DNA from: Chlorokybus atmophyticus
Taxonomy: Eukaryota > Plantae > Mesostigma and Chlorokybus algae
Direction of reading: 5' to 3'
Assembly (NCBI GenBank): GCA_009103225.1
Contig: RHPI01000977.1
Coordinates: 68,478-101,186, forward strand
DNA: 32,709 nt
Shown here piece by piece: positions 1,022 to 27,393 of this stretch. Position 1 is the first letter of the stretch; every line of letters starts with the position of its first letter. A program made the position numbers and the translations under genes. The notes under the pieces were generated by a model, which did no database searches, had not been told where the DNA came from, and saw nothing but the letters and a program-made list of their open reading frames with translations.

Positions 1022-1337
1022 GCTGCTCGGCAATACGCGAACCGCCCACTGTCGGTGATTCCAAAGCTGCAAGGGTAAATGCATTGAGATTACGCGTGTC
1101 ATGTGGTAGGTCAACCCTGCATGTCAGATGCCAATCAGGCCGCAATGCAAACCTGGGCTGCATGGGCTGCATGAAGGGCGGCTTCTGCTGCTCGGTGATA
1201 CGCGAACCGCCCACTGTCGGTGACTCTGAAGCGCTGCAAAGGTAAATACACTGAGACTACGCATGTCATGTGGTAGATCAACACTGCACGCTAGATGCCA
1301 ATCAGGCCGCAATGCAAACCTGGGCTGCATGAAGGGC
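1022..1337. repeat. Tandem duplication, 2 copies, period 165 bp, each carrying an 86-nt intron copy
   Basis: The unit gctgctcgg..atacgcgaaccgcccactgtcggtga...gcaatgcaaacctgggctgcatg starts at ~1022 and ~1187. Intron copies are at 1319-1234 and 1152-1067. Confidence 0.9.
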
Positions 1338-2110
1338 TGAACACTTCCCAAGTGTTTGACGAGGGTGTCGTACCCAACCCAGGTTCCCTATTGCACGCAG
1401 AACCAGAAGACCCGCGGAATTACTTAAGCACACGTCATTTAAAACTATTTTGACTAGGTGCATGCTGCAAGGTCTCGCTCGTTCATTGAGAAGTGTGCAC
1501 AGCTTGGAGCAAATGCACTACACTCTTTGTAGTGTTTGAAACTTGCCTGCTGATCGCCAAGGGTAAAGTAGTTAAAATTTCCGGATCTGTGCAGGTACGT
1601 GCTTTCTGTCTCGAGGGGCCTGGAAGACGACTGGAACCAACCAGCCAGAGCGGTTCTGCTCTTCGTAGACCTTGGTTAGTATGTTCGTGTACTCGTCGTG
1701 CGTTCCTGCTCCCAATCTGTCAGCTGCAGTCGGCGTTTTCAGTGAAACCGTTCGTAATGCTCGTCACAAGCAACGATCACCTGCAATGTCACGAGTACAA
1801 CCAGCAAACCGATCAATGCATGGCTGTTGTGCAGGCGTGCCTGCTGACGGCATGAGATGCGAGAAGTTGGGATTGTCTGATGACGGCGACCACGCGCAAG
1901 GTGTTCTACACTTTGGAGACGATGTGACAACAAGTACCTTTGTGCCATCGTTTGAACATTTGACCAATAAGAATCGGCCATGACTGGTTTCCAATTTTGT
2001 AGTCGACAATGACGTCTATATTGTCTTGTTGCAGTTGCTCAGCAAGCCTCCGCACACGCTCTGCATGATGCTTGTCAAACTGGCAGTAGCTGATAAACAC
2101 AGTCAACTTG
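1320..2110 (-). other. SEFIR domain of copy 1 (three exons)
   Basis: TVFISYCQFDKHHAERVRRLAEQLQQDNIDVIVDY...SWP...|VIVACDEHYERF...GAGTHDEYTNILTKVYEEQNRSGWLVPVVF...VPAQIRKFNYFTL...|WVGYDTLVKHL resembles the recalled prokaryotic SEFIR consensus (VFISYS.DS..H...V..LA..L...GIDV..D; V..VC...Y..R; G.G...E; K.IPV.F; Y..L; GY..L...L). Confidence 0.75.
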
Positions 2111-2268
2111 GCCTCTGACGCCGCGGACGCTGCCTTTGTAGCCTCTTGTCCCTGTCCGCTATGTGCCACAGCACATGCAAATAACCATAAGCATGGTACC
2201 TGTAGTACAACACTTGCCGCACATGGCATGTGTGCATGATTTGCAACGAAAGCTATAGCAAAACTTAC

Positions 2269-5070: not shown

Positions 5071-5661
5071 GGTTATTGATTGACCCTCCAGCCCGGTCTG
5101 TTGAACGCCTCCTCTACCGCCGTGCGATATTCAAGTTGATTTTGGACGTATAGGGTCTCACCGCGCTGGCATGCGCTGAAAACACACAACATGCTGGTCA
5201 TGATGGAAATCCTGCTGATTGCTGGCGAGTCTAGGAGAAAAGGTAAACTATACTGCCAGTACAGTGTACCCACCTGTGAATACTTTCCAGGATTATGGCT
5301 TTGAGATCGTCAAAGTCATCATAGAAGATAGGCATGATTTGATGTTTCCTGGACTCTCCAACATAATGCGCAGCTCCTCTAGGCAGTAGCAGGATTTCCC
5401 GTATCGACGAGAAAGGACAGGCATCTTGATGCGAGCGGACCGCACATTGGCAATGATGACATCCCAAGCTCCGTTGGTTTCCCCGGGCTGCAAGCTGAGC
5501 TCGTCCACGAAGCAGGTGATTCCAACTCTGTCAAGCATGCGATGCAGATAGTCAACAAGATTGTTCTTGACGTCAGGCCCTCTATGGCTCAGGAAAACGT
5601 CGCAGGGAGAGTGAGGGATAGTCTTTGACAGCGGCATATTGTCTCCGTCTGCAACACGCAA
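5071..5661 (-). other. TIR domain of copy 1
   Basis: DVFLSHRGPDVKNNLVDYLHRMLDRVGITCFVDELSLQPG...PVLSRRYGKSCYCLEEL...IMPIFYD matches plant TIR motifs (DVFLSHRG.D, SxWCLxEL, PIFY). The catalytic Glu position (CLEEL) is retained. Confidence 0.92.
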
Positions 5662-8259: not shown

Positions 8260-8985
8260 ATGGACCGATTGGTGATTCGGAGGCTGCCTGCAGTGCTAGC
8301 TGCTGCTACATCCATTGTTACTGGTGCCGGCTACTGGAACCACACATATCTCAATTTGGACGCTCCTTATGATGCTGCTATGGTGTAAGTTCAACTACAG
8401 CTTTCCTTGTAAAGCAAGCAGAGCATTCCTGTTGCGACAAAATGCTGCACCATGCTCATAAGATTTTGCATGTGCTGCGGCAAGTAGCGGGCAGGGACGA
8501 GAGGCAACAGGGGCACTGTCCGCGACGCCAGCGGCAATATTGACAGCAATCATCAGCTGCTGCCAGTTTGACAACCAAGACAAAGAGCGCGGAGACTTGC
8601 CGAGCAACTGCAACAAGACAACATAGACGTCATCGTGAACTTCAAGAACCAGTACAAGTCATGGCCGGCTTTCATTGCAGATGCTGCCGGCACAAAGGTA
8701 GCACTTGTCACATTATTACTGGTGGTGAACACCTTGCGCATGGTTGCTGTCATCAACAAACCCCAACTTCTGGCATCTTATGTAGTAAACAGGCACGTCT
8801 GCATGATAGCGATGCATGCTGTGATTTGCAAATCGCAATTGTTCTCATGATGCTTTAGGTGATCGTAGCCGTGTGATGAGCATTATGAGAGATTTTAATT
8901 CAGGAGCCGACCGCAGCTGATGCATTGGGGGCGGGGATGCACGACTACTACACAACGTACTGAACAAGGTTTATGAGAAGCTGAG
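8260..8985 (+). pseudogene. Decayed signal-anchor-SEFIR gene (paralog of 16716-18563), no EP part found
   Basis: Exon 1 MDRLVIRRLPAVLAAATSIVTGAGYWNHTYL...|gtaagt is homologous to MGGLASLRLHAVLAAAAAIVAVAGYWKHTHL. It is followed by ISCCQFD...EQLQQDNIDVIVNFKNQYKSWPAFI...GTK|VIVA.CDEHYERF...GAG.HDYY...NKVYEK with several frameshifts. Homology ends at ~8985. Confidence 0.85.
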
Positions 8986-9710: not shown

Positions 9711-10412
9711 TCAGAGAGATAGGATTACTACCCAAATGAGCCTCATCCTCCTTAACAGCTTGCGAAGTGACGTTGATGTTCCCGCTTTCTCATCAGAGAG
9801 CCGATGAGCCTCCTGCCTGAGGTCATCATCAGGCTCCCGGGCCCCTCTCACCCCAGCAGTGACGAGCTCCTCTAGTGCGTTGTCGATTGAGCTCTTATTC
9901 CTCTCAGGGTACGCATTGCGGTATGCCTGCTCCAGCAGGTAATAACGCCGCGGCCGCACAACAGCCTCAGCAACCGAGAGACGAAGGTAATGCTTGCCGT
10001 TGGAGGCATAAAAATTCGCACCCTTTTGAGAATACCAGTTGGCAATGTCGATGGGCTCCACCAGCAACCGGCGAGCCAGTTGCTTGTGGAAGAAAGAATG
10101 TCCTCTGGGATGGAACCGCGCTCGTACTGCGTTGTAACCCAATCCCAAAAGTTTTTTCAGTTTACCCCGAGCTCTCTCAATCTGTGGTGGCCGGTTCTTT
10201 TTGAAGCCAACATAGTAGTCCTGTTCGTCCTGGTACTGCTTGATAACATCCATCGCGTCATCAACACTATCGTACTTCATGGACAGCTCTGCTGTCTGCC
10301 TGTTCCGAGCATCTTCCCTGTTGCGCACAAACGCGTAGAGTCCATACAGGAACCCGAGCAAGCCAACCAGACAGGCGAGGATGCTGGGCCAGGGAGGCGC
10401 TTGTTCAGCCAT
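9711..10412 (-). CDS. Intronless 233-aa protein: N-terminal TM helix plus EP-like domain plus hydrophobic C-terminal tail
   Basis: Open frame from ATG 10412 (MAEQAPP) to the stop at 9711. Hydrophobic SILACLVGLLGFLYGLYAFV, then DAMDVIKQY...DYYVGFKK...RARGKL...RRLLVEPIDIANWYS...KHYL...RPRRYYLLEQAY (EPIDIA at 10058-10041). Ends RRMRLIWVVILSL. An upstream in-frame alternative start exists at 10487. Confidence 0.85.
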   Translation of the reverse strand: MAEQAPPWPSILACLVGLLGFLYGLYAFVRNREDARNRQTAELSMKYDSVDDAMDVIKQYQDEQDYYVGFKKNRPPQIERARGKLKKLLGLGYNAVRARFHPRGHSFFHKQLARRLLVEPIDIANWYSQKGANFYASNGKHYLRLSVAEAVVRPRRYYLLEQAYRNAYPERNKSSIDNALEELVTAGVRGAREPDDDLRQEAHRLSDEKAGTSTSLRKLLRRMRLIWVVILSL

Positions 10413-13400
10413 ATGTAGGTTGTAATGAGCCCCACGCGTGCATGCGCTCTCGTGCCCCTTTGCACAGCAGACTTTAGCACTGCGCATGCCAGCGAGTGTT
10501 AGTGTTGGTGTTCAACTACTGTCCAACCGATCCTATTGCCGTGGAGCGGAGATATTGCAACGCCCCTCAGCAGTGCGAAACGCTCCTGCCAACCAAACAG
10601 CATGCCAGACTAACTCAATGTGTGCATGCTGGCGAGCCAGATCAGCTTGAAGGGGTAAGCTGCCCTAAATCAGCACCAGCCCAGCCAAGCTGCGGCGACT
10701 CGGACTGGCAATAGTTTCATGCTACTCAGTTCAGCTGACGAGCAGAAACCATGACGCTACTCAGTTCAGCTGGCGAGAATGGTGGCGGCAACAGCTCTCG
10801 GACATGTTCACATCATGGCTTTACGTGAACCGCGCTAAACAACGTGAAATTGAAAGTCAGAAGCTAAAATGTTCTCTACAGCGGCTAGGATGGATCAAGC
10901 AATGTCAGCATTACAATGCTACGCCGGTATGCATGCATGTAAGCCAAGATTGAGCAAGCTTCGCAAGCTGTCACTGGCACTGGTGGATACACAAACAGGC
11001 AGCGCTAGCACGGACGGCTTCTTGCACCTTTTGGCTAACAAGCCGCACCAACCTCTTACGAGGTTAGGCTTCAGGCTTCCTTGCTCCAGCAAGCTCTGGA
11101 GATTGGGGACAGCTTCAGAGCCATGACACTGCGTCCAACTGACCCAGCCAGCAACCTCGGCGACCTACAGCAGCGCTCCTTTCTTCAGGCGCAAGCAGGG
11201 GTTGCCCTTACCCTTAGCCCTTCAGTGCAACGGCAGCGTCGCCGCTCACCCCCTCCTCCCTCCCGCCCCACAGCGTCAACACTGGCTCAGTCTAACGCGA
11301 GAACTCCGTCTGAGAGGTAAGATAAAGTCTTGCGGCAAGCTTGACTTTCTCTCATCGGCTACAGGTAACAAGATTCGTGTCACACGAAACATGTCGCCGG
11401 GTCATCAAGCACAAAATGGTCATAAAACAATGTCGCCTTCTGACAAAGTCTTTTTCACAAAGGTTGGACTGACAAGCATGGGCTCTGTTGGTTGGGTTTT
11501 ATTGACCGAGCCGTGAGGCGTAAGTTGGTGTTGGTGCGAGCTATGCTACAGCCGCAACCTGAATGCCTGAATGCCGAGCTAGAGGTGGGCGGAGGAGCCT
11601 GCAGGGCTGAGCTGAACCGTCATGTAGGCCGCTCTGCTGCTGGGGATAAGTGGTGCAAGCCGCCCACTACGTGACAGCGACACCCCCCTTTTCCCGCCAG
11701 CCGGCTGCGCAGAGCACCAGCTAGCATTGGCCGCAAACATGCACGATGCCCTATGCCTTCTGCTGCTGTTCTCAAGTTTGGTGTAGGCTGCGCGTGTTTG
11801 CTGCAGCTATGACAAGCTGCTTGCTTGGGCATTACTGTTCAAACCAGGATTGAATGAGTCTAGCAGAAGTTGCGTACATACTACTTCAATGTAGTATGAT
11901 ACTACATCGAAGTGCTTACGTTGCAATGACTGCAGTTAGCATAGCAAGCTGCAGCTAATAAGGAGGTTTATTGGTGGCTCAGCAGCAAGGGTTCCTAAGC
12001 CACTTTCGTACCTGCAGACAAGGCTCTAGAAGTCATAGATCCTCGTGACGCTGCGAGGTACGTCTGCAGGTACGAGTGGCTCAATAGATTGAACTAGCAG
12101 TAACTGAAAGTAGCATTGACGCGCGAAGAAGTGACTAGCCCTCGTGATATAACTCTTGCACGAAGCTGTCATGTCACTGCTTGCATTCAGGATACGCTGC
12201 TGACAACGTGACAGCAGCCAGCTCGTTGCTGTCATGTTCTCCATCACCATCATGACAGCCCTGCATTCCGCGGCCAGCATACAGTTTTCGCATGTCTTCC
12301 ATGCTGCGTTTCGGTATCTGCTGAACGGTGCACAATAGCATCATACCTGGATCTTCAGAAATGCTGCACCCTTGAACACAATATAGAAGCAATGGTTAAC
12401 ATGACTTCAAGCCTTACCATTCATACATGCAGTCCCGCGCATACATCTCTGCACGTTCTCCCCATGCATACACTACTGTCTCTCTCTCACTGACATCTGT
12501 ACAGACTTGCACGCAGTCATGATCATGCACTTTCGCTAACACACCCATCCCACAACCACCTACATTCTTACACCCCCACACACATATATTCGTTTAATCT
12601 CACACTCCCAGACAACTGAAAGCTTGAGCTGATGTCTTTCAACAAGCTTTACAAAAGGGGAAGTTCTAATGGTGTACAACACCTGGATGCTTGCATGAAG
12701 AAGTGCATACGTGCAGTGTGGGGGAATGAGAGCATGAGACGCAGGATTTGAAAAGCGGCGGAGTGGGCGGCCAACCTGCGCTGCAGCGGTGCTGGTAAGC
12801 CTGGTAAGCCGAGGTGAAGGCAGCCAGCCGCCAGGCAACGACGATGACACCTACTTCATACACGGCGAAAACGACAAGGCTGCCGTCGCCCCTCCCCCGG
12901 CCAGCACGTCCGGCTAAGTCAATCTCACTTGCCTTGACTTTTTCCTCCTCGCTACACTAGTACAGACTTATGGGGTGGAGGAGAAGAATTGGTGTTAGTT
13001 GCAATGTTTGCGTGCGATGGACGATTGCGGGTTGGCGGATGGACAACGACCGAGGTTGGGCGAAGCCTAACAGATGAATGTCGATGGACGGCTGGCTGAT
13101 TGGGTGGTTCGAAACTTCTGGTCGCCACTGTTGTGTCTGTCAATTGAGCTGGAGCATGTCAACAACCGCAAAGCGAGCTCAGCCTCAGCCTGCTTGCATG
13201 TTAAAGCCAATCTCGAATGCATGCCTCACGAGCACACAAGCACAGTCACACGCACACGGGCGCACACACGCATCCCCCCGTCCCCCCTTTTATCCATAAG
13301 CCAACGTGACCTCTGTGCGCATGCTTACCTTGCCTGGTTGCAGTACCAGTTGGTGTTTTGTTGTCGCTAGTGGCGTTGGGAGAGAGATGGCTGCGGTAGT

Positions 13401-15650: not shown

Positions 15651-15712
15651 GCAGCTGATTGAGTGTCAAGTTAGACCAGACTACCCTAATGGTTCAGGTT
15701 TATGCTGGAGAG

Positions 15713-16334
<622 letters not shown>

Positions 16335-16715: not shown

Positions 16716-18563
16716 TCATGAGCTCCCTTCGATGGCGTTCATCTCGTCCAATGCGTGTTGTGTTGAAGACGGTGCATCACTTTTGTTATGTTTCTCATAC
16801 TGCAGCTCTAAGAACGTGTAGTACTCTGGTCGGTTGTCCGCCTCAAGGTAATGTCGATTGCCGACAGGCCATTGCTTCCACAGCTCAAGCCGGTAGTAGT
16901 TGGCAATGTCAATTGGCTCAACCATGAGTCGAAAACTGTTGCCTCTCGCACACCAAACATTGGACTTGCTAAAAAAGTCAGCAGGCAACATGCCATCCAT
17001 GTGCCATTTGTACGTAGTACGCCAGAAGTCCCGTAGATACCTGTCAGGTTGGTGGGGGGGTTACATCAGTACTTAGCAGTTTTTCACTTTGCAATGAACT
17101 TGAACTTGAACTTGCAACTGCAATGCATGTGACCTGACCTGCGTGCGTCCTCGACTTTTTTCAAGCGCTCTGCTTGCGGGCTGCCATCACCGCCACGATA
17201 TGCTCTGAAGTCAGCATAGTAGTCTGCAGAGGTTTGCGCAAAGGCTTGTATCGTGTCCATGGCATCTTGTGCCTCATTGCGCCACTTGTCAGTAAACTCA
17301 GTTTCATGTCTCCGCTGCTCGACGACACTCAAAACGCCCATTCTCGGTGACTCTGAAGCGCTGCAAAAGTAAACGCACTGAGACTTCACTTGTTATGTGG
17401 TATCAATATGTCGTATCAACACTGCATGTCAGACGCCAATCAGGCCGCAGTGCAAACCTCTGTGGCATGGGCTGCACAAAGGCCGGAACATTTTTCAAGT
17501 GCTTGACGAGGGTGTCGTACCCAACCCAGGGAGCCTATTGCACGAGGATAGGAACAGAAGACCCGCGGACTAATTAAAGCAGCACATCATGGAATACTAC
17601 GTTGAATAGGTGCATGCTGCAAGGTCTAGCTCGTGCATCAAGGAGTGTGCACAGCTTGGAGCACCTCACTCTTTGAACTTACCTGATGACCACCAAGGGT
17701 GAAGTAGCTAAATTTCCGGATCTGCGCAGGAACATCCTTTCTTGCTCCAGGAGGCCGGAAAACGACTGGTACCAACCACCCGGAAAGGTTCTGCTCCTCA
17801 TAAACCTTGTTCAGTATGTTCGTGTACTCGTCGTGCGTCCCCGCGCCCATCTTAACAGCTGCGGTCGGCTGCTTTAATGAAAACCGCTCATAATGCTCAT
17901 CACAGGCCACGATCACCTGAAGCGTCATGAGAACACCCTCAAGCCAAGCATGCCTTGCTGTGATGCAGACGAGCCTGCTTTTTGACAATGTTGAAAGCAA
18001 ATTGCGGGAATTGTTGGTGACAGCGACCATGCGCAAGATTCACGACCAGGAATGATGTGACAACCGGTACCTTGGTGCCATTGTTCAACATCTGCCCAAC
18101 AAAAGCCGGCCAGGACTGATACGTATTTTTGTAGTCGACAATGACTTCTATATTGTTTTGTTGCAGTTGCTCGGCAAGCCTCCTCACACGCTCTGCGTGA
18201 TGCTTGTCGAACTGGCAGTAGCTGATAAACACAGTCATCTTGGCCTCTGGTGCCGCGGACAGTTCCCCTGTAGCCGCTCCTCCCTGTCCGCTATGTGCCA
18301 CAGCACATGCAAAGTACCATAAGCATGGTACAGCATCGGCAAGAAAGAAGCTTGTGCATGCTTTGCATAGAAAGCTGTAACAAAACTTACGCAACAGCAG
18401 CGTTGTTGACAGCAGCTGAGTCTTTTTCCTTATACGTATGCTTATCCTGGTGTTGTAAACTACCCGGGTGGAGATGCGTGTGCTTCCAGTAGCCAGCGAC
18501 AGCGACAATGGCTGCAGCCGCAGCCAGCACTGCATGCAGCCTCAGAGATGCCAGCCCGCCCAT
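16716..18563 (-). CDS. Intact 6-exon signal-anchor-SEFIR-EP protein, 416 aa
   Basis: Exons 18563-18391, 18290-18071, 17916-17683, 17534-17458, 17360-17139, 17040-16716 (173+220+234+77+222+325 = 1251 nt). All introns are GT-AG, phases are compatible and there is no internal stop. Protein: MGGLASLRLHAVLAAAAAIVAVAGYWK...TVFISYCQFDKHHAERV...GAGTHDEY...WLVPVVF...GYDTLVKHL...DYYADFRAY...RRYLRDFW...LPADFF...FRLMVEPIDIANYYR...HYLEADNRPEYY...EGSS*. An assembly gap lies upstream, so a further 5' exon cannot be excluded. Confidence 0.88.
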
Positions 18564-18652: not shown

Positions 18653-19136
18653 TGAGTTCATTAGCCATGCCCAAACCCACCAAGCGCTATACAGCTGCGG
18701 AAGACCAAAACGAGGGGGGGGGGGGGGGGGGGGNNNNNNNNNNNNNNNNNNNNNNNNNNNNNNNNNNNNNNNNNNNNNNNNNNNNNNNNNNNNNNNNNNN
18801 NNNNNNNNNNNNNNNNNNNNNNNNNNNNNNNNNNNNNNNNNNNNNNNNNNNNNNNNNNNNNNNNNNNNNNNNNNNNNNNNNNNNNNNNNNNNNNNNNNNN
18901 NNNNNNNNNNNNNNNNNNNNNNNNNNNNNNNNNNNNNNNNNNNNNNNNNNNNNNNNNNNNNNNNNNNNNNNNNNNNNNNNNNNNNNNNNNNNNNNNNNNN
19001 NNNNNNNNNNNNNNNNNNNNNNNNNNNNNNNNNNNNNNNNNNNNNNNNNNNNNNNNNNNNNNTGAGTTCATTAGCCATGCCCAAACCCACCAAGCGCTAT
19101 ACAGCTGCGGAAGACCAAAACGAGGGGGGGGGGGGG
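18653..19136. other. Assembly gap (N 18734-19062) flanked by an identical ~70-bp sequence ending in poly-G
   Basis: tgagttcattagccatgcccaaacc...gaccaaaacgagggg occurs at 18653-18733 and again at 19063-19136, typical of unmerged contig ends. Confidence 0.85.
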
Positions 19137-21120: not shown

Positions 21121-24017
21121 GGCAGATGGACTCCATCAAAGACCATCCCTCACCCTGGCAGTGATATTTTCTTGAGCCATAGAGGGGACGTCAAGAGGAA
21201 CTTTGTTTATTTCCTAAGCCACCTTCTTAAGCAAGCAAGTGAGCATGACCTGCTTCGTGGATGAACTTAGCTTGCAGCCTGGGGACAAAGCCTGGTTTGT
21301 GATTACCGGCAATGTATGGTCCGCTCGTATAAAAATGCATGTTCTATTGTGTAACTATGGGGACTCTTGGTACTGCTTTGAAGAGCTGCGAATTATGATG
21401 GAGGATGCAGAAAACATCGTCAAGCCCATCTTCTTTGATGATAACTTTGACAGCCTGCAAGCCATATTTTAGGAAAGTAAAAGCAGGTGAGTAGATTTGT
21501 ATACATACACACTGTCGCTCATTAAGGTAGACATGTTCCTGGTTGCAAACATGTTTCGTGCTTGCAGCGCATGCCTCAATGGTAAAGAGGAATACATCCA
21601 AAACAAATCGGCATACTGTGATGCGCTTGATATAGCATTTACAACAACGGTTCTTCATGCCTTGGCTCCGCATGCTAGACCTTGCTACAACTGATTGGGA
21701 TGGCACACTTCCTGTTCCCGACAGGGTCCGTTCAGAGCTGGTCTATCTCGAGTGGAAACGCCCGCGCTGTTCAGCCTTGAGCAATTTCTTGTGTAATGCC
21801 GCTGCATGCCAAAACTTGGTCGTCCTAATCATAGAACAAGCCGTCCATGATCATGCCTCAATGACAGTGGCTAAGTCCATAGGAAACCTCAAGGTGCTGC
21901 AAATTCTGGTGCTGCGCGGTTTTTATGATTTGAACGAGCTGCCTGAAGCGCTTGACGGGCTCACTATGCTATAGACTTTAGTTCTCTTCAGAACTGGTTT
22001 GCACATGCTACCCGAGTCTGTTGGAGGTCTCATGCATCTACAAAAACTGGACCTAGCATTAGCCTCAACTTGACGGCGCTGCCGGAGTCTGCAAATGCTG
22101 AACCTGAGCAAATGCAACAGCTTGGCGGCGCTGCCAAAGTCTTTTGGCAAACCGGCTGCCGTACAGACGCTGGACCTGAGCAAGTGCGACAGCTTGATGG
22201 CACTGCCGGAGTCCTTCGGCAAGTTGGACAACTTAGAAAACGCTGAACCAGAGCGCGTGCGACTACTTGGCGGTACTGCAGGAGTCCTTCAGCAAGCTCG
22301 CTGCTCTGCGTGAGCTAGACCCAAGCTGGTGCGCGAGTTTGGTGGCGCTGTCGAAGTCTTTTTGCAAGCTCACTGCTCTGCACAATCTGAAGCTAAACGG
22401 GTACTTCCATCTGAAGGCGCTGCCAGAAATCTTCAGTGCGCTGCATCCTGCTGTTGTTGCTTTGCTACAGCACCAGCAGGAGGCGAAGGCAAAGGCCTCG
22501 GCCGCTATCGATAATGCTGCTACTGCTGTGCAGCAGCACCAGCAGGACGCGGAGGCCAAGGCCGAGGCCGCTGTCAACCATGCTGCTACTTCGTAAGTTT
22601 AGCATGGCTGTCTTCGCAAACCATGCGCAAACTCTTGTGCGGCAAATGCTTTACCATGCTTATAACAATTTGCGTGTGCTGCGGCATATAGCGGACAGGG
22701 AAAAGAGGCGAAGTTGACAGTATTCATCAGCTACTGCCCCTTTGACAAGCATCACGCAAAGCGTGTGTGGAGGCTTGTTGAGCAACTGCAACAAGATAAA
22801 GTACCCGTCATTGTCGACTACAAATCTGGATACCAATCATGGCCAGCTTTTATTGGGCAGATGTTTAAGGATGGCACAAAGGTACCAATGGTCACATCAT
22901 CTCTGATAGTGTAGAACATCTTGCGCATCGTGGCTGTCATCATCCATTCCCATCTTACATAGATTATATAGTAAGCAAGCACGTGAGCATGACAGACATG
23001 CATGCTTGGTTTCCGGTTGTTAACATAACGTTTCAGGTGGTGGTGGTTTGTGATGAGCATTATGAGCGATTTTCATCAAAACAGCCACCCGCAGCCGATA
23101 GGATGGGCGCGGGGACGCACGACGAGTACACGAACATACGAAACAAGGTTTATGAGGAGCAAAATCTTTCCGGGTGGTTGGTTCCAGTCATCTTCCGCCC
23201 CCCCGGAGAAAGAAAGCACGTACCAACGCTCATTCGAAATTTGGCTACTTCACCCTTGGCGATCAGCATGCAAGTTTAAAGGGGGAGGTGCATTTGCTTC
23301 ACGCTATGCAAACCTTTATGCACGAGCAAGACTTTGTAGCATGCGCTCAGTCTTTCTGAATGGTCTTACATGACGTCTGCGTTAGTAACTCCGTGGCTCT
23401 TTCGATGCCATCCTCATGCAATGGTAACCCTGGGCTGGGTACGACACCCTCATCAAGCACTTGGGAAGTGTGCCGGCCTTCATGCCCATGTCACACAGGT
23501 TTGCATTGCAGCCCACTTGACCTGCAGTGTTGACCTACCATGACATCCATAGTCCTAGAGCATTGTATATTGCAACGCTTCAGAGCCACAGAGAGTGGTC
23601 GAATCGCGTATTGCCACGCAGCAAAGCCATGAAACAGAGTTTGCTAACATGTGGCGCAAGGAGGTATAAGACGCCATGGACACATAACAGCCTTTTTGCT
23701 GACCTCGGCAGACTTCTACGCTGACTTCAGAGCATATTATGGCAGTGATGGCAGCCCGCAAGCAAAGCGCTTGAGAAGGGTCGACCGTGCACGGAGGTTA
23801 AGATTTGCGCAATTGAACGCTTGCTCGGTACTGTTATGACCTCCCCACCAACCTAACAGGGTTACACGGGACTTCTGGCGTATAGCATACAAGTGGTACA
23901 TGGATGGCATGTTGCCTATTTTTTCAGCAAGTCCAGTGTTTGGTTTGTGAGAGGCAACACGACGCGACTCATGGTTGAGCCCATTGACATTGCCAATTGG
24001 GCTCGAGCTGTGGAAGA
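21121..24017 (+). pseudogene. TIR-(NB-ARC deleted)-LRR-SEFIR-EP(truncated) relic, copy 2 of the fusion NLR
   Basis: TIR DIFLSHRG.DVK...TCFVDELSLQPG...SWYCFEEL...KPIFFDD. TIR exon 2 runs out of frame directly into MPWLRMLDLATTDWDG at ~21650. Shortened LRRs, SEFIR exons (22700-23490), and EP up to LMVEPIDIANW (23977-24000). Many stops and frameshifts. Confidence 0.9.
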
Positions 24018-26715
24018 TGTCATGCCTATTGCCCGCGCATACCAGCTATTATCGAGCATGCCTACATCGAAACCATCGTCCGGCCTACCAGCATACCAAC
24101 TCGCGCGCGTCACTGATCAGTAGCTAGGTCATGACTCTAGAGTAGCTCACGACCAGAGCCTACATAGGCACCGCGCGTAGCTGTTCAGTTGTGAGTTCGG
24201 TTATAAGTGGTGTTCTATATCAAGTGGTGATTGCTGTGGAAATAGCCTCGAAGTAACTGTTAGCTGTTCTGAACAGTCATGATTTGACTTGTATAAGTAG
24301 TCACGGTATTCACCGGATCAGCTGGTGACACTGTGAGTGAGAAAGCTAAGAGCTTGTGAAGCGACTTGAATGGCTAGCACGACATTCCGGTTATTACTGA
24401 GAAACCCCTCACTATGTGAGAGCCTGTGGATGCTCGTGTGCATCGTGCTTGTCATTGCTGTGAGCTTGGTGTGCCTGGTTGCAGTGTGCTTGTTGGCATC
24501 AATCAGGGCATAGTATCCACGTGTTGCTTGCTCATTCACCTCACTAAATAGTATAACACATTTTCCGCTCATGCAAAGAATTGTGTAAACAGCACTACCT
24601 ATAGTAGTGGCTTGTTGACTCACAGTGTCACCCTCTGTGCTCAAGTCAGTGCGTCGTATTCTGCATCAGAGCGTGCAGTCTATATCTGGGGACACATCCA
24701 TGTGCATTCGTTGTCACTGTCATCACATAATGCACACACAAGCACTAGTGTGGTGAGTGGTAGCGGCATCAAGACAGGCGGTAGAGCACAAACACTCTAC
24801 CCTGCATACACTTTAACACTATGATGGCTTTTGTACTATATATAGTACTTGTACTATAGGAAGTACTGAAAAACAGACTTTTTGGGCCACCAGGTTATAA
24901 GAAGTAAATTAATTTGTTAATTAACATATCCTATATGGTTAAACTCAAAATTTGAAGGAGAACACGGGAAAATTGTCCTTAGAAATTTATTGCTTAATAG
25001 TCAACTAGGTCTGCAATTTCAAAGTCAAGTCTAAACTGCGTTTTTTGGGTATTTTTCGCCCATTTTGGCGGCGCTTTCAGCAGTGAGTTAGCCCCGCTCC
25101 TAGCAAGCTCTGGCGGCTGAAAAGCCCTGGCGATGGCGTCCTCATCGGAGGCAGCGGCGGCGGCGGCGGATAGGTCCAGGGGTTGGGTAGGTAGGAAGGT
25201 GAAGGCCCCAGCTACTTACTGGACAGTAGCGTGGGCTAAGGCAGAGTTTGGGGCAGCTTGGCAAGTTGCCTACATTGATGGGCACGTTGTGGGCTTCAAG
25301 CAGGGGCCCACAACGAGCGGCGATAGCTGGGAGGTGTGGTGGGCATATGACGGCACCAATGGCTTGCTTGCCTTGAATGCCATGCTATCCTACCTTCAAG
25401 AAGAAGAGGGCGACTCACGTCAGCAGCAGAAGGGTGGGGAGGACTTAGCAAGCCTCTTGCATGCGTTAGATGATAGGCTGGAGGAGGAAGAGGAGTGCTT
25501 GCCAGAGGAAGAGGAGCAGCGCCTGCCAGAGAGTGAAGAAACGGAGATAGAGGAGGATGAGGAACTGAACAGTAAACATAAGGGAAGGATGAGGGAGAGA
25601 GGCAAAGGGAGAGGCAGGGGAGGCAGGGGGCGTGGAGTTGCAGCTGGTTGCGGAGCAGGGAGAGGGAGGGGAGGAGGGAGAGGCTCATCCCAACCAACTG
25701 TGCCACGCGGGTCAGGCAGGCCGAGGGGGAGGGGGCGGGCGCCGCGCGCGCATGTGCGTGTCAGCCTGCGCCAGCCGCTGGACAGTGAGGACGAGGTGTC
25801 TCCTGATTCTGCAAGCAGCGAGGATGAAGCCCCCACCGGTAGGTATTGCGTGCACATGCATGCGCTCAACAGAATACATCACAACCCACACAACACTTAT
25901 TGTTGACTACACTCACAGGCATGGATGAAGATGTAATTGGCAGTGCATATGATGATGAGGAAATCGATCCGCGTGCTGTTCGTTGGCGTGTGGGTGGAGA
26001 GGATGAAGTGTACAATTGGCTTGCTGCTGATTCTTTCGTGGGTCATACGGGTCCGTGCATTCAAGACTTGAGTGGTAAAAACCCCTTGCAACTCTTCCTC
26101 CTCTTCTTGCCATTGGTTTTTTGGGATCATGCGGTGATGTAAACCAACCTATACGCTAGCGCCCAACGCACACACCTTGATGTTGAAGCGGGTCGTGCTG
26201 GATTCCTGTCACACGTCAAGAGTTGTTGCAATGGGTGGGTCTCACGCTAGCCATGGCATGTCACACATTAAATGACATGCAATCTCATTGGCGCACCGGT
26301 CTAATGGGGGCAATCACATTTCCTAACGTTGCACGGTGTATGCCATTCAAACGCTATCAAGCCATAAAACGCTACTTTCACCTTAATGATAATAGCCAAC
26401 GCCCTAGTGAACATGCTACACGTGAGTACCGGCTATGGCACATACTACCCGTAATCAACACACTACGTGACACATTCCGCAAGAACTATAAGCCTGGTAA
26501 ACACATTACTATTGATGAGTGCACCATGCCTATACGCAATAAGACGTGCCCTATTCATAAATACAACTCTAGCAAACCTTACAGGTTCGGTATTGAAGTG
26601 TTCCAAGCATGTGACTCGGACACATACTATTGCTATGATTTTATAGTATATGACAAGCTACCTAGGCACGAGTTGCACACATGGGTAGTGAAAGAACTAG
26701 TAGCTAATGTGCCAT

Positions 26716-27393
26716 ATGAGGGGAAGGAGGGGGGCACAGGGGAACTGATTGGCTGAAGGGGGAGTGATTGCGAACTACAAAGCACGTACTTTCGGGCTGC
26801 TTCTCCCACCGGACGAGAGTCGAGTTGGTTGTGGACGAGTTGCTCTTGCAGCTCTCGAACAAACTCCATGCGTGTGTACGTTGGGTTTGCGTGCACAAAG
26901 CAAACCCACACGTTAGCAATTGCCCCATCAAACAGGCCCCACTATGCTCGGTGCCACCATGTCACCGCCTTCGATTGCTTTTGTATACTATAGTTTGTCT
27001 TTAAGCAATACTTGTCATATTGATCAACGGCATCCTTGTGTAGGTTGTATACGACGGCGCACTCCGGAGCAACAACATCCGCACGCCGACCATCGGTTTG
27101 CAAACGACTCACAACATCATGACTCACACCATGACTTGTGGATAGAAAGAAGACGGGCTGCTTATCCTTCAAACACACCGCAATCAAGCCATCACTAGGG
27201 GCAATAGCACACTTGAATGTTCCTTGCACGTCGTGATTGTCTAGAATTACCATACTAGAAGGATAACCAACACGGTTAGCTAGTATAGTGCCTGTGCCAT
27301 AGTGTCCACGTGATCTCAACCATAGTAGTACTTTAGGTGAAGTGAAGCCTCAATCTAGGACAATGTGGTGATGTCCTCCCTCCTTCCCCTCAT
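26716..27393 (-). other. 678-bp internal inversion bounded by perfect 16-bp inverted repeats
   Basis: atgaggggaaggaggg at 26716-26731 and ccctccttcccctcat at 27378-27393. Flipping the segment restores the frame ...VPYEGKEGGHHHIVLD*GFTSPKVLLWLRSRG. Confidence 0.9.

Follow-up and report, generated by a model that had tools for sequence, protein, structure and literature searches.

What a SEFIR domain of prokaryotic appearance is doing in an early-branching streptophyte alga, and whether it could be an enzyme there, are the questions raised by a stretch of 32,709 nucleotides from Chlorokybus atmophyticus (contig RHPI01000977.1, positions 68,478 to 101,186; hereafter the window). SEFIR domains are known from animal interleukin-17 (IL-17) signalling and from bacterial anti-phage defence, in which nicotinamide adenine dinucleotide (NAD+) is depleted. 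A sequence-only reading of the window had placed a spliced, prokaryote-like SEFIR domain at 17458-18240 and had proposed it as a candidate NAD+-cleaving enzyme (NADase) of possible horizontal origin, pointing to the glutamate of a GAGTHDEY motif. The interval is indeed the SEFIR domain (residues ~76-233) of an expressed six-exon gene, whose product consists of an N-terminal membrane helix, a SEFIR domain that resembles those of bacteria (bSEFIR) and an EP domain of the EDS1 type without the lipase-like domain. A bacterial-type SEFIR domain is thus present in this alga that is expressed, has been under purifying selection and keeps the invariant Glu of its family; it is physically fused to an EP domain and, in sister copies, also to TIR-NB-ARC-LRR receptors. 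The EP domain is commonly regarded as having robust homologues in seed plants only, and this fusion offers a testable protein for two questions, that of TIR-type signal reading outside seed plants and that of whether eukaryotic SEFIR domains can be enzymes. A full-text search of the literature gave no paper that combines SEFIR with EDS1 or with a streptophyte; the protein itself is already in a public proteome, with these Pfam labels precomputed.

The SEFIR-EP gene and its transcripts

Read on the minus strand, the interval 17458-18240 contains three exons that encode a SEFIR/TIR-like domain, from strand A (VFISY) through to the last helix. Their product is identical, residue for residue, to residues 76-233 of P0008, a public C. 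atmophyticus protein of 416 amino acids (jgi/Chlat1/3612) that was found by profile and word search and served as the reference for the spliced product. The whole of P0008 is the conceptual product of these three exons together with one upstream and two downstream exons. All five introns are skipped at GT..AG boundaries, read on the gene strand, in RNA-type contigs from runs X1-X3, which come from two studies, the joints being 18290/18391, 17916/18071, 17534/17683, 17360/17458 and 17038/17137; the unspliced DNA form is present in a fourth run. Since the contigs of X1-X3 skip all five introns the gene is transcribed and spliced as modelled, and the introns on which the sequence-only reading relied are real.

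Exon 1 (18391..18563, on the minus strand like the rest of the gene) contains the start codon and a hydrophobic N-terminal helix that may anchor the protein in a membrane; it is bounded by the joint 18290/18391 and accounts for residues 1-58 of P0008, with a mean hydropathy of 2.0 over residues 4-22, and contig coverage shows that the 5' untranslated region extends to at least 18645. Exon 2 (18071..18290), referred to below as exon A, lies between the first two joints and encodes a linker followed by the first third of the SEFIR domain, that is strand A, helix A, strand B and helix B, as supported by Pfam and PADLOC matches; the SEFIR part starts within it at the ATG of Met76 (18238). Exon 3 (17683..17916) encodes strand C (VIVACD), an insertion of the SEFIR type, helix C with GAGTHDEY and strand D (WLVPV), as placed by translation, by its joints (17534/17683 and 17916/18071) and by the secondary structure of an AlphaFold2 (AF2) model. 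Within exon 3 the GAG codon of Glu161 occupies 17827..17829. Exon 4 (17458..17534) supplies the C-terminal SEFIR helix (GYDTLVKHL...PAF..P), recognised by alignment with bacterial sequences and bounded by the joints 17360/17458 and 17534/17683. The helical N-terminal part of an EP-like region follows in exon 5 (17137..17360), defined by P0008, its two joints (17038/17137 and 17360/17458) and an AF2 model of residues 232-416, and exon 6 (16716..17038) encodes the core of the EDS1-type EP domain (LMVEPIDIANYYR...), identified by Pfam and Foldseek, and the stop codon. P0008 therefore represents a stand-alone gene for a membrane anchor, a SEFIR domain and an EP domain and is not part of any nucleotide-binding leucine-rich repeat receptor (NLR).

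Just upstream of Met76, a contig present in three runs departs from the window: it matches as far as 18237, and the 205-255 letters beyond that point are unlike the window. They could come from a paralogue or fusion-gene transcript that the assembler has merged, or they could be an alternative 5' exon. An assembly gap (a run of N) at ~18730-19020, flanked by G-rich and C-rich tracts, lies just upstream of the gene, and a long (CT)n microsatellite is found at ~15700-16330.

Family, fold and origin of the SEFIR domain

By its sequence the domain is of the SEFIR type and prokaryote-like, as had been proposed. The cut-offs applied were 23 bits for Pfam SEFIR (PF08357, of the STIR clan), 28 bits for TIR_2 and 23.1 bits for EDS1_EP (PF18117). 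The paralogue P0001 scores 41 bits against Pfam SEFIR as a whole protein and 44 (44.0) bits as a domain piece, as compared with 37.7-40.5 bits against TIR_2, the higher figure again being that of the domain piece, whilst the PADLOC bSEFIR model (PDLC03957) gives 74.4 bits for P0001 and 78.9 bits for P0008, the latter over model positions 37-250; P0008 also carries PF08357 in its precomputed Pfam list. The plant TIR model PF01582 has no match in P0001, P0003, P0005, P0006 or the domain piece, but it does match the TIR domain of a TIR-NB-ARC-LRR (TNL) gene within the window, at 41-42.5 bits. A SEFIR match stronger than the TIR match is the criterion that has been used for bacterial SEFIR (10.1101/2022.05.11.491447), and on the domain piece of P0001 the SEFIR match is the stronger by a small margin (44.0 versus 40.5 bits, with none for PF01582); exon A alone slightly favours TIR_2 (26.4 bits) over Pfam SEFIR (24.4 bits), and gives 40.2 bits with PADLOC bSEFIR.

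The likeness to bacteria runs through the whole domain. A tblastn search of the domain against plasmids returned 14 records, all of them bacterial proteins annotated as SEFIR or TIR with 22-32% identity, in which coverage reaches ~95% of the domain and 11 of which cover at least 80% of the query; four of these proteins (from Deinococcus, Nostoc and two Bacillus) score 183-352 bits on bSEFIR and align end to end with the algal domain. By language-model features, the ESM-Atlas clusters closest to the domain belong to bacterial SEFIR/TIR families (0.95). The sequence-only reading had followed bacterial SEFIR sequences as far as the C-terminal GY..L.K.L...PAF..P, and this motif does align with bacterial Y..L.R.L...P....P, P231 being invariant in the alignments with bacterial sequences (A1, A2). 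When phmmer was run with exon B on 1.84 billion representatives, the only matches were Chlorokybus paralogues and three metagenomic fragments, with no other known plant or alga and no bacterial match at E<=0.001, and in a word-index search exon B found nothing and the P0001 domain only Chlorokybus paralogues. Given that exon B alone finds so little, the bacterial likeness is one of profiles and of the whole domain, not a close one.

The features shared with bSEFIR proteins (PDLC03957; Bacillus cereus SEFIR, BcSEFIR, 5y8e/5y8f) are the whole-domain alignment at 23-32% identity, VFISY, CD..Y in strand C, G.G..E with the invariant Glu, VP and the C-terminal Y..L...P....P. There are also clear differences: the algal domain is preceded by a membrane helix and begins at residue 76, whereas the bacterial one lies at the extreme N-terminus, the algal gene has introns, the Glu motif reads GAGTHDE where bacteria have GVGTE, and the bacterial family's C-terminal domain (~300 residues) is absent from the alga, which has an EDS1-type EP domain instead.

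The AF2 model of the SEFIR domain was built with an alignment of 63 sequences (A3), which comprises the alga, the metagenome and 59 bacterial proteins, and reaches a predicted local distance difference test (pLDDT) of 76.6 and a predicted template-modelling score (pTM) of 0.74. In model numbering strand C spans residues 66-71, a short extra helix 73-79 and then a loop follow, helix C spans 93-107 and strand D 114-118. When the model was compared with known structures by VIA-align, the highest Z scores were obtained with the Act1/IL-17R assembly (9ot1_E, Z 15.3) and the IL-17RA SEFIR (4nux, Z 13.2), followed by the SPARTA TIR, which is the best TIR (Z 12-12.9), BcSEFIR (5y8e/5y8f, Z 11.8-11.9), the IL-17RB SEFIR (3vbc, Z 11.1), and the TIRs of RPS4 (Z 10.6) and SARM1 (Z 10.5). 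The top four Foldseek matches are all 9ot1 chains, from the IL-17RA/RB/ACT1 assembly (E 3e-5 to 1e-4). The domain is thus predicted to have a STIR fold, its best matches being SEFIR structures, though by a modest margin. The sequence-only reading had named best matches to ordinary plant TIRs as a result that would count against it; the best matches are of another kind, with none for PF01582 and the RPS4 TIR at Z 10.6 as against 15.3 and 13.2 for SEFIR structures.

A horizontal origin had also been suggested, to be examined by a phylogeny that takes in bacterial and animal SEFIR domains and TIR domains. In a maximum-likelihood tree of 46 domains, whose bacterial part leans towards Firmicutes and which includes neither animal SEFIRs nor TIR outgroups, Chlorokybus and two metagenomic sequences form one clade (support 100/97); this clade does not nest among the 41 bacterial rows, and a long branch sets it apart from every one of them. 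The comparison with bacterial SEFIRs accordingly gives a separate, long-branched eukaryotic clade, and no specific bacterial donor lineage is visible in these 46 domains. The two metagenomic relatives, on ENA contigs (L001:4716-5448 and L002:5133-5800), are SEFIR genes 33-35% identical to the algal one. Both contigs are eukaryote-like, with sparse open reading frames (ORFs), and each gene is interrupted once by a GT..AG intron, whose position differs from those in Chlorokybus; in both, the SEFIR domain begins at the initiator Met, with no EP or other Pfam domain found adjoining it and no EP match downstream. ORFs for a C5 DNA methylase and a DUF5906 protein lie near the gene on L002, and L001 shows a one-base frame slip in a contig with ~3x coverage.

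There is thus a small and old eukaryotic SEFIR subfamily. The domain has long been resident in eukaryotes; its patchy distribution and the all-bacterial outgroup would fit an ancient transfer, of which neither donor nor direction is visible with this sampling. Every detectable relative beyond Chlorokybus and the three metagenomic fragments is bacterial, the search with exon B reached no other known plant or alga, and the two metagenomic relatives that were read carry the SEFIR domain at the extreme N-terminus as bacterial proteins do, and we would therefore put an ancient horizontal transfer of a bSEFIR-type gene into an ancestor of Chlorokybus or an older eukaryote, with introns and new partner domains gained later, only a little short of an even chance, held back as it is by the long branch and the separate clade, by the identity to bacteria of only 23-32%, by the failure to retain the bacterial C-terminal domain (hhalign probability 0.24%), and by a tree with a Firmicute-biased sample and neither outgroup nor animal SEFIRs.

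Glutamate 161 and the possible function of the protein

Eight columns are invariant across the 63 sequences of A3 (V132, Y140, G155, G157, E161, Y170, P181 and P194), and E161, the Glu of GAGTHDEY that stands where bacteria read GVGTE, is the sole charged residue amongst them; it is likewise invariant in A1 and A2. The family profile matches the BcSEFIR crystal sequence at 3e-49, with E83 of GGVGTE in the E161 column. E161 is residue 96 of the AF2 model, where it is predicted to lie in the first turn of helix C, and the earlier placement of this Glu in helix C is thereby supported by the model.

The catalytic Glu of TIR domains is E642 in SARM1, E77 in SPARTA and E88 in RPS4. In plant TIRs it has been located in helix C (PMC9153377). 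The TIR_2 profile was used as a ruler in place of coordinate superposition. On this ruler the Glu of CLEEL in the canonical TIR of the window (a gapless piece), which aligns with CLMEL of flax L6, is found at position 71, whilst residues 3-62 of the metagenomic relative P0005 map to positions 50-93, with the equivalent Glu at 68-71. By topology and profile arithmetic, which fall short of proof, the position of the algal Glu is consistent, within one turn of a helix, with that of the catalytic Glu in TIRs, being at most three positions from the catalytic position of the profile. The algal domain has further likenesses to the TIR NADases (SPARTA TIR-APAZ, SARM1 and plant TNL TIRs) in its STIR fold (Z 10-13) and in having a conserved Glu where helix C begins; it differs from them in its extra residues between strand C and helix C, and in having neither a motif of the W/C-L-x-E-L type nor a PF01582 match, and the TNL of the window carries a TIR of its own, of the ordinary plant type and with CLEEL. 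No Pfam match was obtained with short pieces around the Glu, and phmmer searches of the PDB with single exons gave no match.

A bacterial SEFIR defence protein is reported to use its N-terminal SEFIR domain to deplete NAD+ (10.1101/2024.02.11.579819); this bacterial system consists of a single protein, and the depletion yields ADP-ribose (ADPR) and nicotinamide. Because the algal domain shares with this NAD+-depleting family both the entire sequence pattern that defines the fold and the invariant Glu, it is a candidate NADase, a reading by analogy that is the best supported and that we would put at somewhat better than an even chance. Like bacterial bSEFIR proteins, the SEFIR domain would then cleave NAD+, the putative catalytic residue being Glu161 where helix C begins, and its activity would be switched on when molecules assemble, as in other STIR enzymes; the EP domain would stand where bacterial bSEFIR proteins have their C-terminal sensor part and most likely regulate assembly or read nucleotide signals.

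Several observations weigh against this reading. The margin of SEFIR over TIR is small in both Pfam bits and Z, and confidence in the model is middling (pLDDT 76.6), with the loop before helix C lower still. Furthermore, the profile of the C-terminal half of the SEFIR domain matches no TIR by sequence and an hhalign comparison with the window's own TIR aligns only the N-terminal part, and as neither provides a bridge to TIR the Glu-to-Glu equivalence rests on topology and arithmetic. A search of the literature gave no residue of bacterial bSEFIR that has been proven catalytic. Finally, the animal SEFIRs that are the best matches of the model are scaffolds and are not known to be enzymes.

Alternatively, the algal domain may have no enzyme activity and serve only for assembly, as the SEFIR domains of IL-17 receptors and Act1 do, gathering molecules at a membrane, with a structural or interface role for Glu161. 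The animal domains (IL-17RA, IL-17RB and Act1) belong to the same Pfam family and their assembly, together with the IL-17RA SEFIR, provides the best structural matches (Z 15.3, 13.2 and, for IL-17RB, 11.1), and that assembly matters in the bacterial defence protein is evident from D40A, a change at a predicted SEFIR-SEFIR contact that abolishes defence. By sequence, however, the algal domain groups with the bacterial NAD+-depleting family and not with animal SEFIRs, to which it is 14-16% identical, a PDB search with the family profile at E<=1 picks up neither IL-17R nor Act1 chains, and among the invariant columns the one charged residue is a Glu where helix C begins, all of which would make a pure scaffold, without reported enzyme activity as in animals, rather unlikely. 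That the domain is simply a divergent TIR of the TIR_2 type, to which the SEFIR label adds nothing, is very improbable, for although TIR_2 is also above its cut-off (37.7-40.5 versus 28 bits) and slightly ahead on exon A, and the SPARTA TIR is within ~2 Z units of SEFIR structures, the family-specific bSEFIR score is about twice that of either Pfam model, the domain can be aligned over its whole length with proteins that annotation and models assign to SEFIR, the BcSEFIR crystal sequence among them, and there are ~20 residues, including the short helix, between strand C and helix C, with P0005 having 16 residues more than the TIR_2 profile from strand C to the end of strand D.

Returning to the candidate NADase, the region that follows its SEFIR domain matches PF18117 at 37.8 bits in exon 6 and 39.6 bits in P0001, which exceeds the cut-off given earlier. 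The C-terminal 185 residues (232-416) were modelled by AF2 with a pLDDT of 69, and the 12 best Foldseek matches of this model in the PDB are all EDS1, PAD4 or SAG101 (TMq 0.49-0.64), with E values of only 0.008-0.3. The likeness to these three proteins thus lies in the PF18117 match and in a predicted fold of the EP type; unlike them, the algal protein has a short EP fused to a SEFIR domain and a membrane anchor, and no lipase-like domain was found in P0008 or P0001. Envelopes of bSEFIR that extend to residue 272-367, and BLASTP alignments covering 57-68% of P0008, had given rise to the idea that the EP domain descends from the C-terminal domain of bacterial bSEFIR; profiles lend it no support, and it was rejected because the hhalign comparison of the post-SEFIR region with 30 bacterial C-terminal regions detects no homology (probability 0.24%). 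From these sequences the algal protein appears to keep only the SEFIR module of the bacterial design, with an EP domain where bacteria have what is presumed to be the sensor part. Elsewhere in the window an intronless ORF at 9711-10487 (minus strand) has a weak match to EDS1_EP (21.3 bits, below the cut-off), and shares an LVEPIDIAN.Y core with the SEFIR-EP genes at 33% identity.

A more speculative extension, which we think distinctly doubtful, is that the protein is a one-chain version of the TIR-EDS1-helper pathway of seed plants. The EP domain would bind the nucleotide signals of surrounding TIR receptors and bring about assembly of the fused bacterial-type SEFIR domain, with NAD+ cleavage at the membrane as the executing step; EP would then have first been a sensor bolted onto a NADase of prokaryotic derivation, before it met the lipase-like domain of EDS1.

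Copies and other features of the window

The back-translated GAGTHDEY pattern has exactly three matches in the window, at 1689-1712 (minus strand), 17824-17847 (minus strand) and 23106-23129 (plus strand), where none are expected by chance and none of 100 shuffles gave a match. The sequence-only reading had the Glu of THDEY kept in three copies and lost in a relic, and with respect to the motif this holds, the relic reading GAGMHDYY at 8898-8954 (plus strand). It needs correction with respect to the state of the copies as judged by tblastn with single exons: copy 2, that of 17458-18240, is the only intact SEFIR copy in the window, and copies 1 and 3 are frame-broken. Between copies the SEFIR exons have diverged to a synonymous distance (dS) of 0.56-0.85 with dN/dS of 0.20-0.27, and the SEFIR domain has been under purifying selection for most of the history of the copies. 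As the copies are old and have been constrained to this degree, the conservation of GAGTHDEY in all three is informative even though two are broken, and the unchanged eight-residue motif reflects more than recent common descent.

Copy 1 (1322..2166, minus strand) forms the C-terminal end of a TNL gene, with TIR, NB-ARC and LRR ORFs upstream; its exon B is frame-broken, giving two overlapping tblastn matches in different frames, one of them through stop codons. Copy 3 (22684..23484, plus strand) stands behind leucine-rich repeat exons, with a weak LRR_14 match upstream, and the end of its exon B is shifted, with stop codons downstream. The relic (8260..8954, plus strand) consists of an anchor exon and SEFIR fragments, also detected by tblastn, with another residue in place of the Glu. 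The TNL of copy 1 includes a TIR exon of the ordinary plant type at 5293-5661 (minus strand; PF01582 42.5 bits), with CLEEL as its catalytic motif; before this locus was broken, one gene therefore held both a canonical TIR and a SEFIR domain.

Fragments of a piggyBac-type transposase (PF13843, DDE_Tnp_1_7) are present at 26223-26753 on the plus strand (76.8 bits) and at 26945-27319 on the minus strand (29.9 bits), and since the two lie on opposite strands the element is broken or rearranged.

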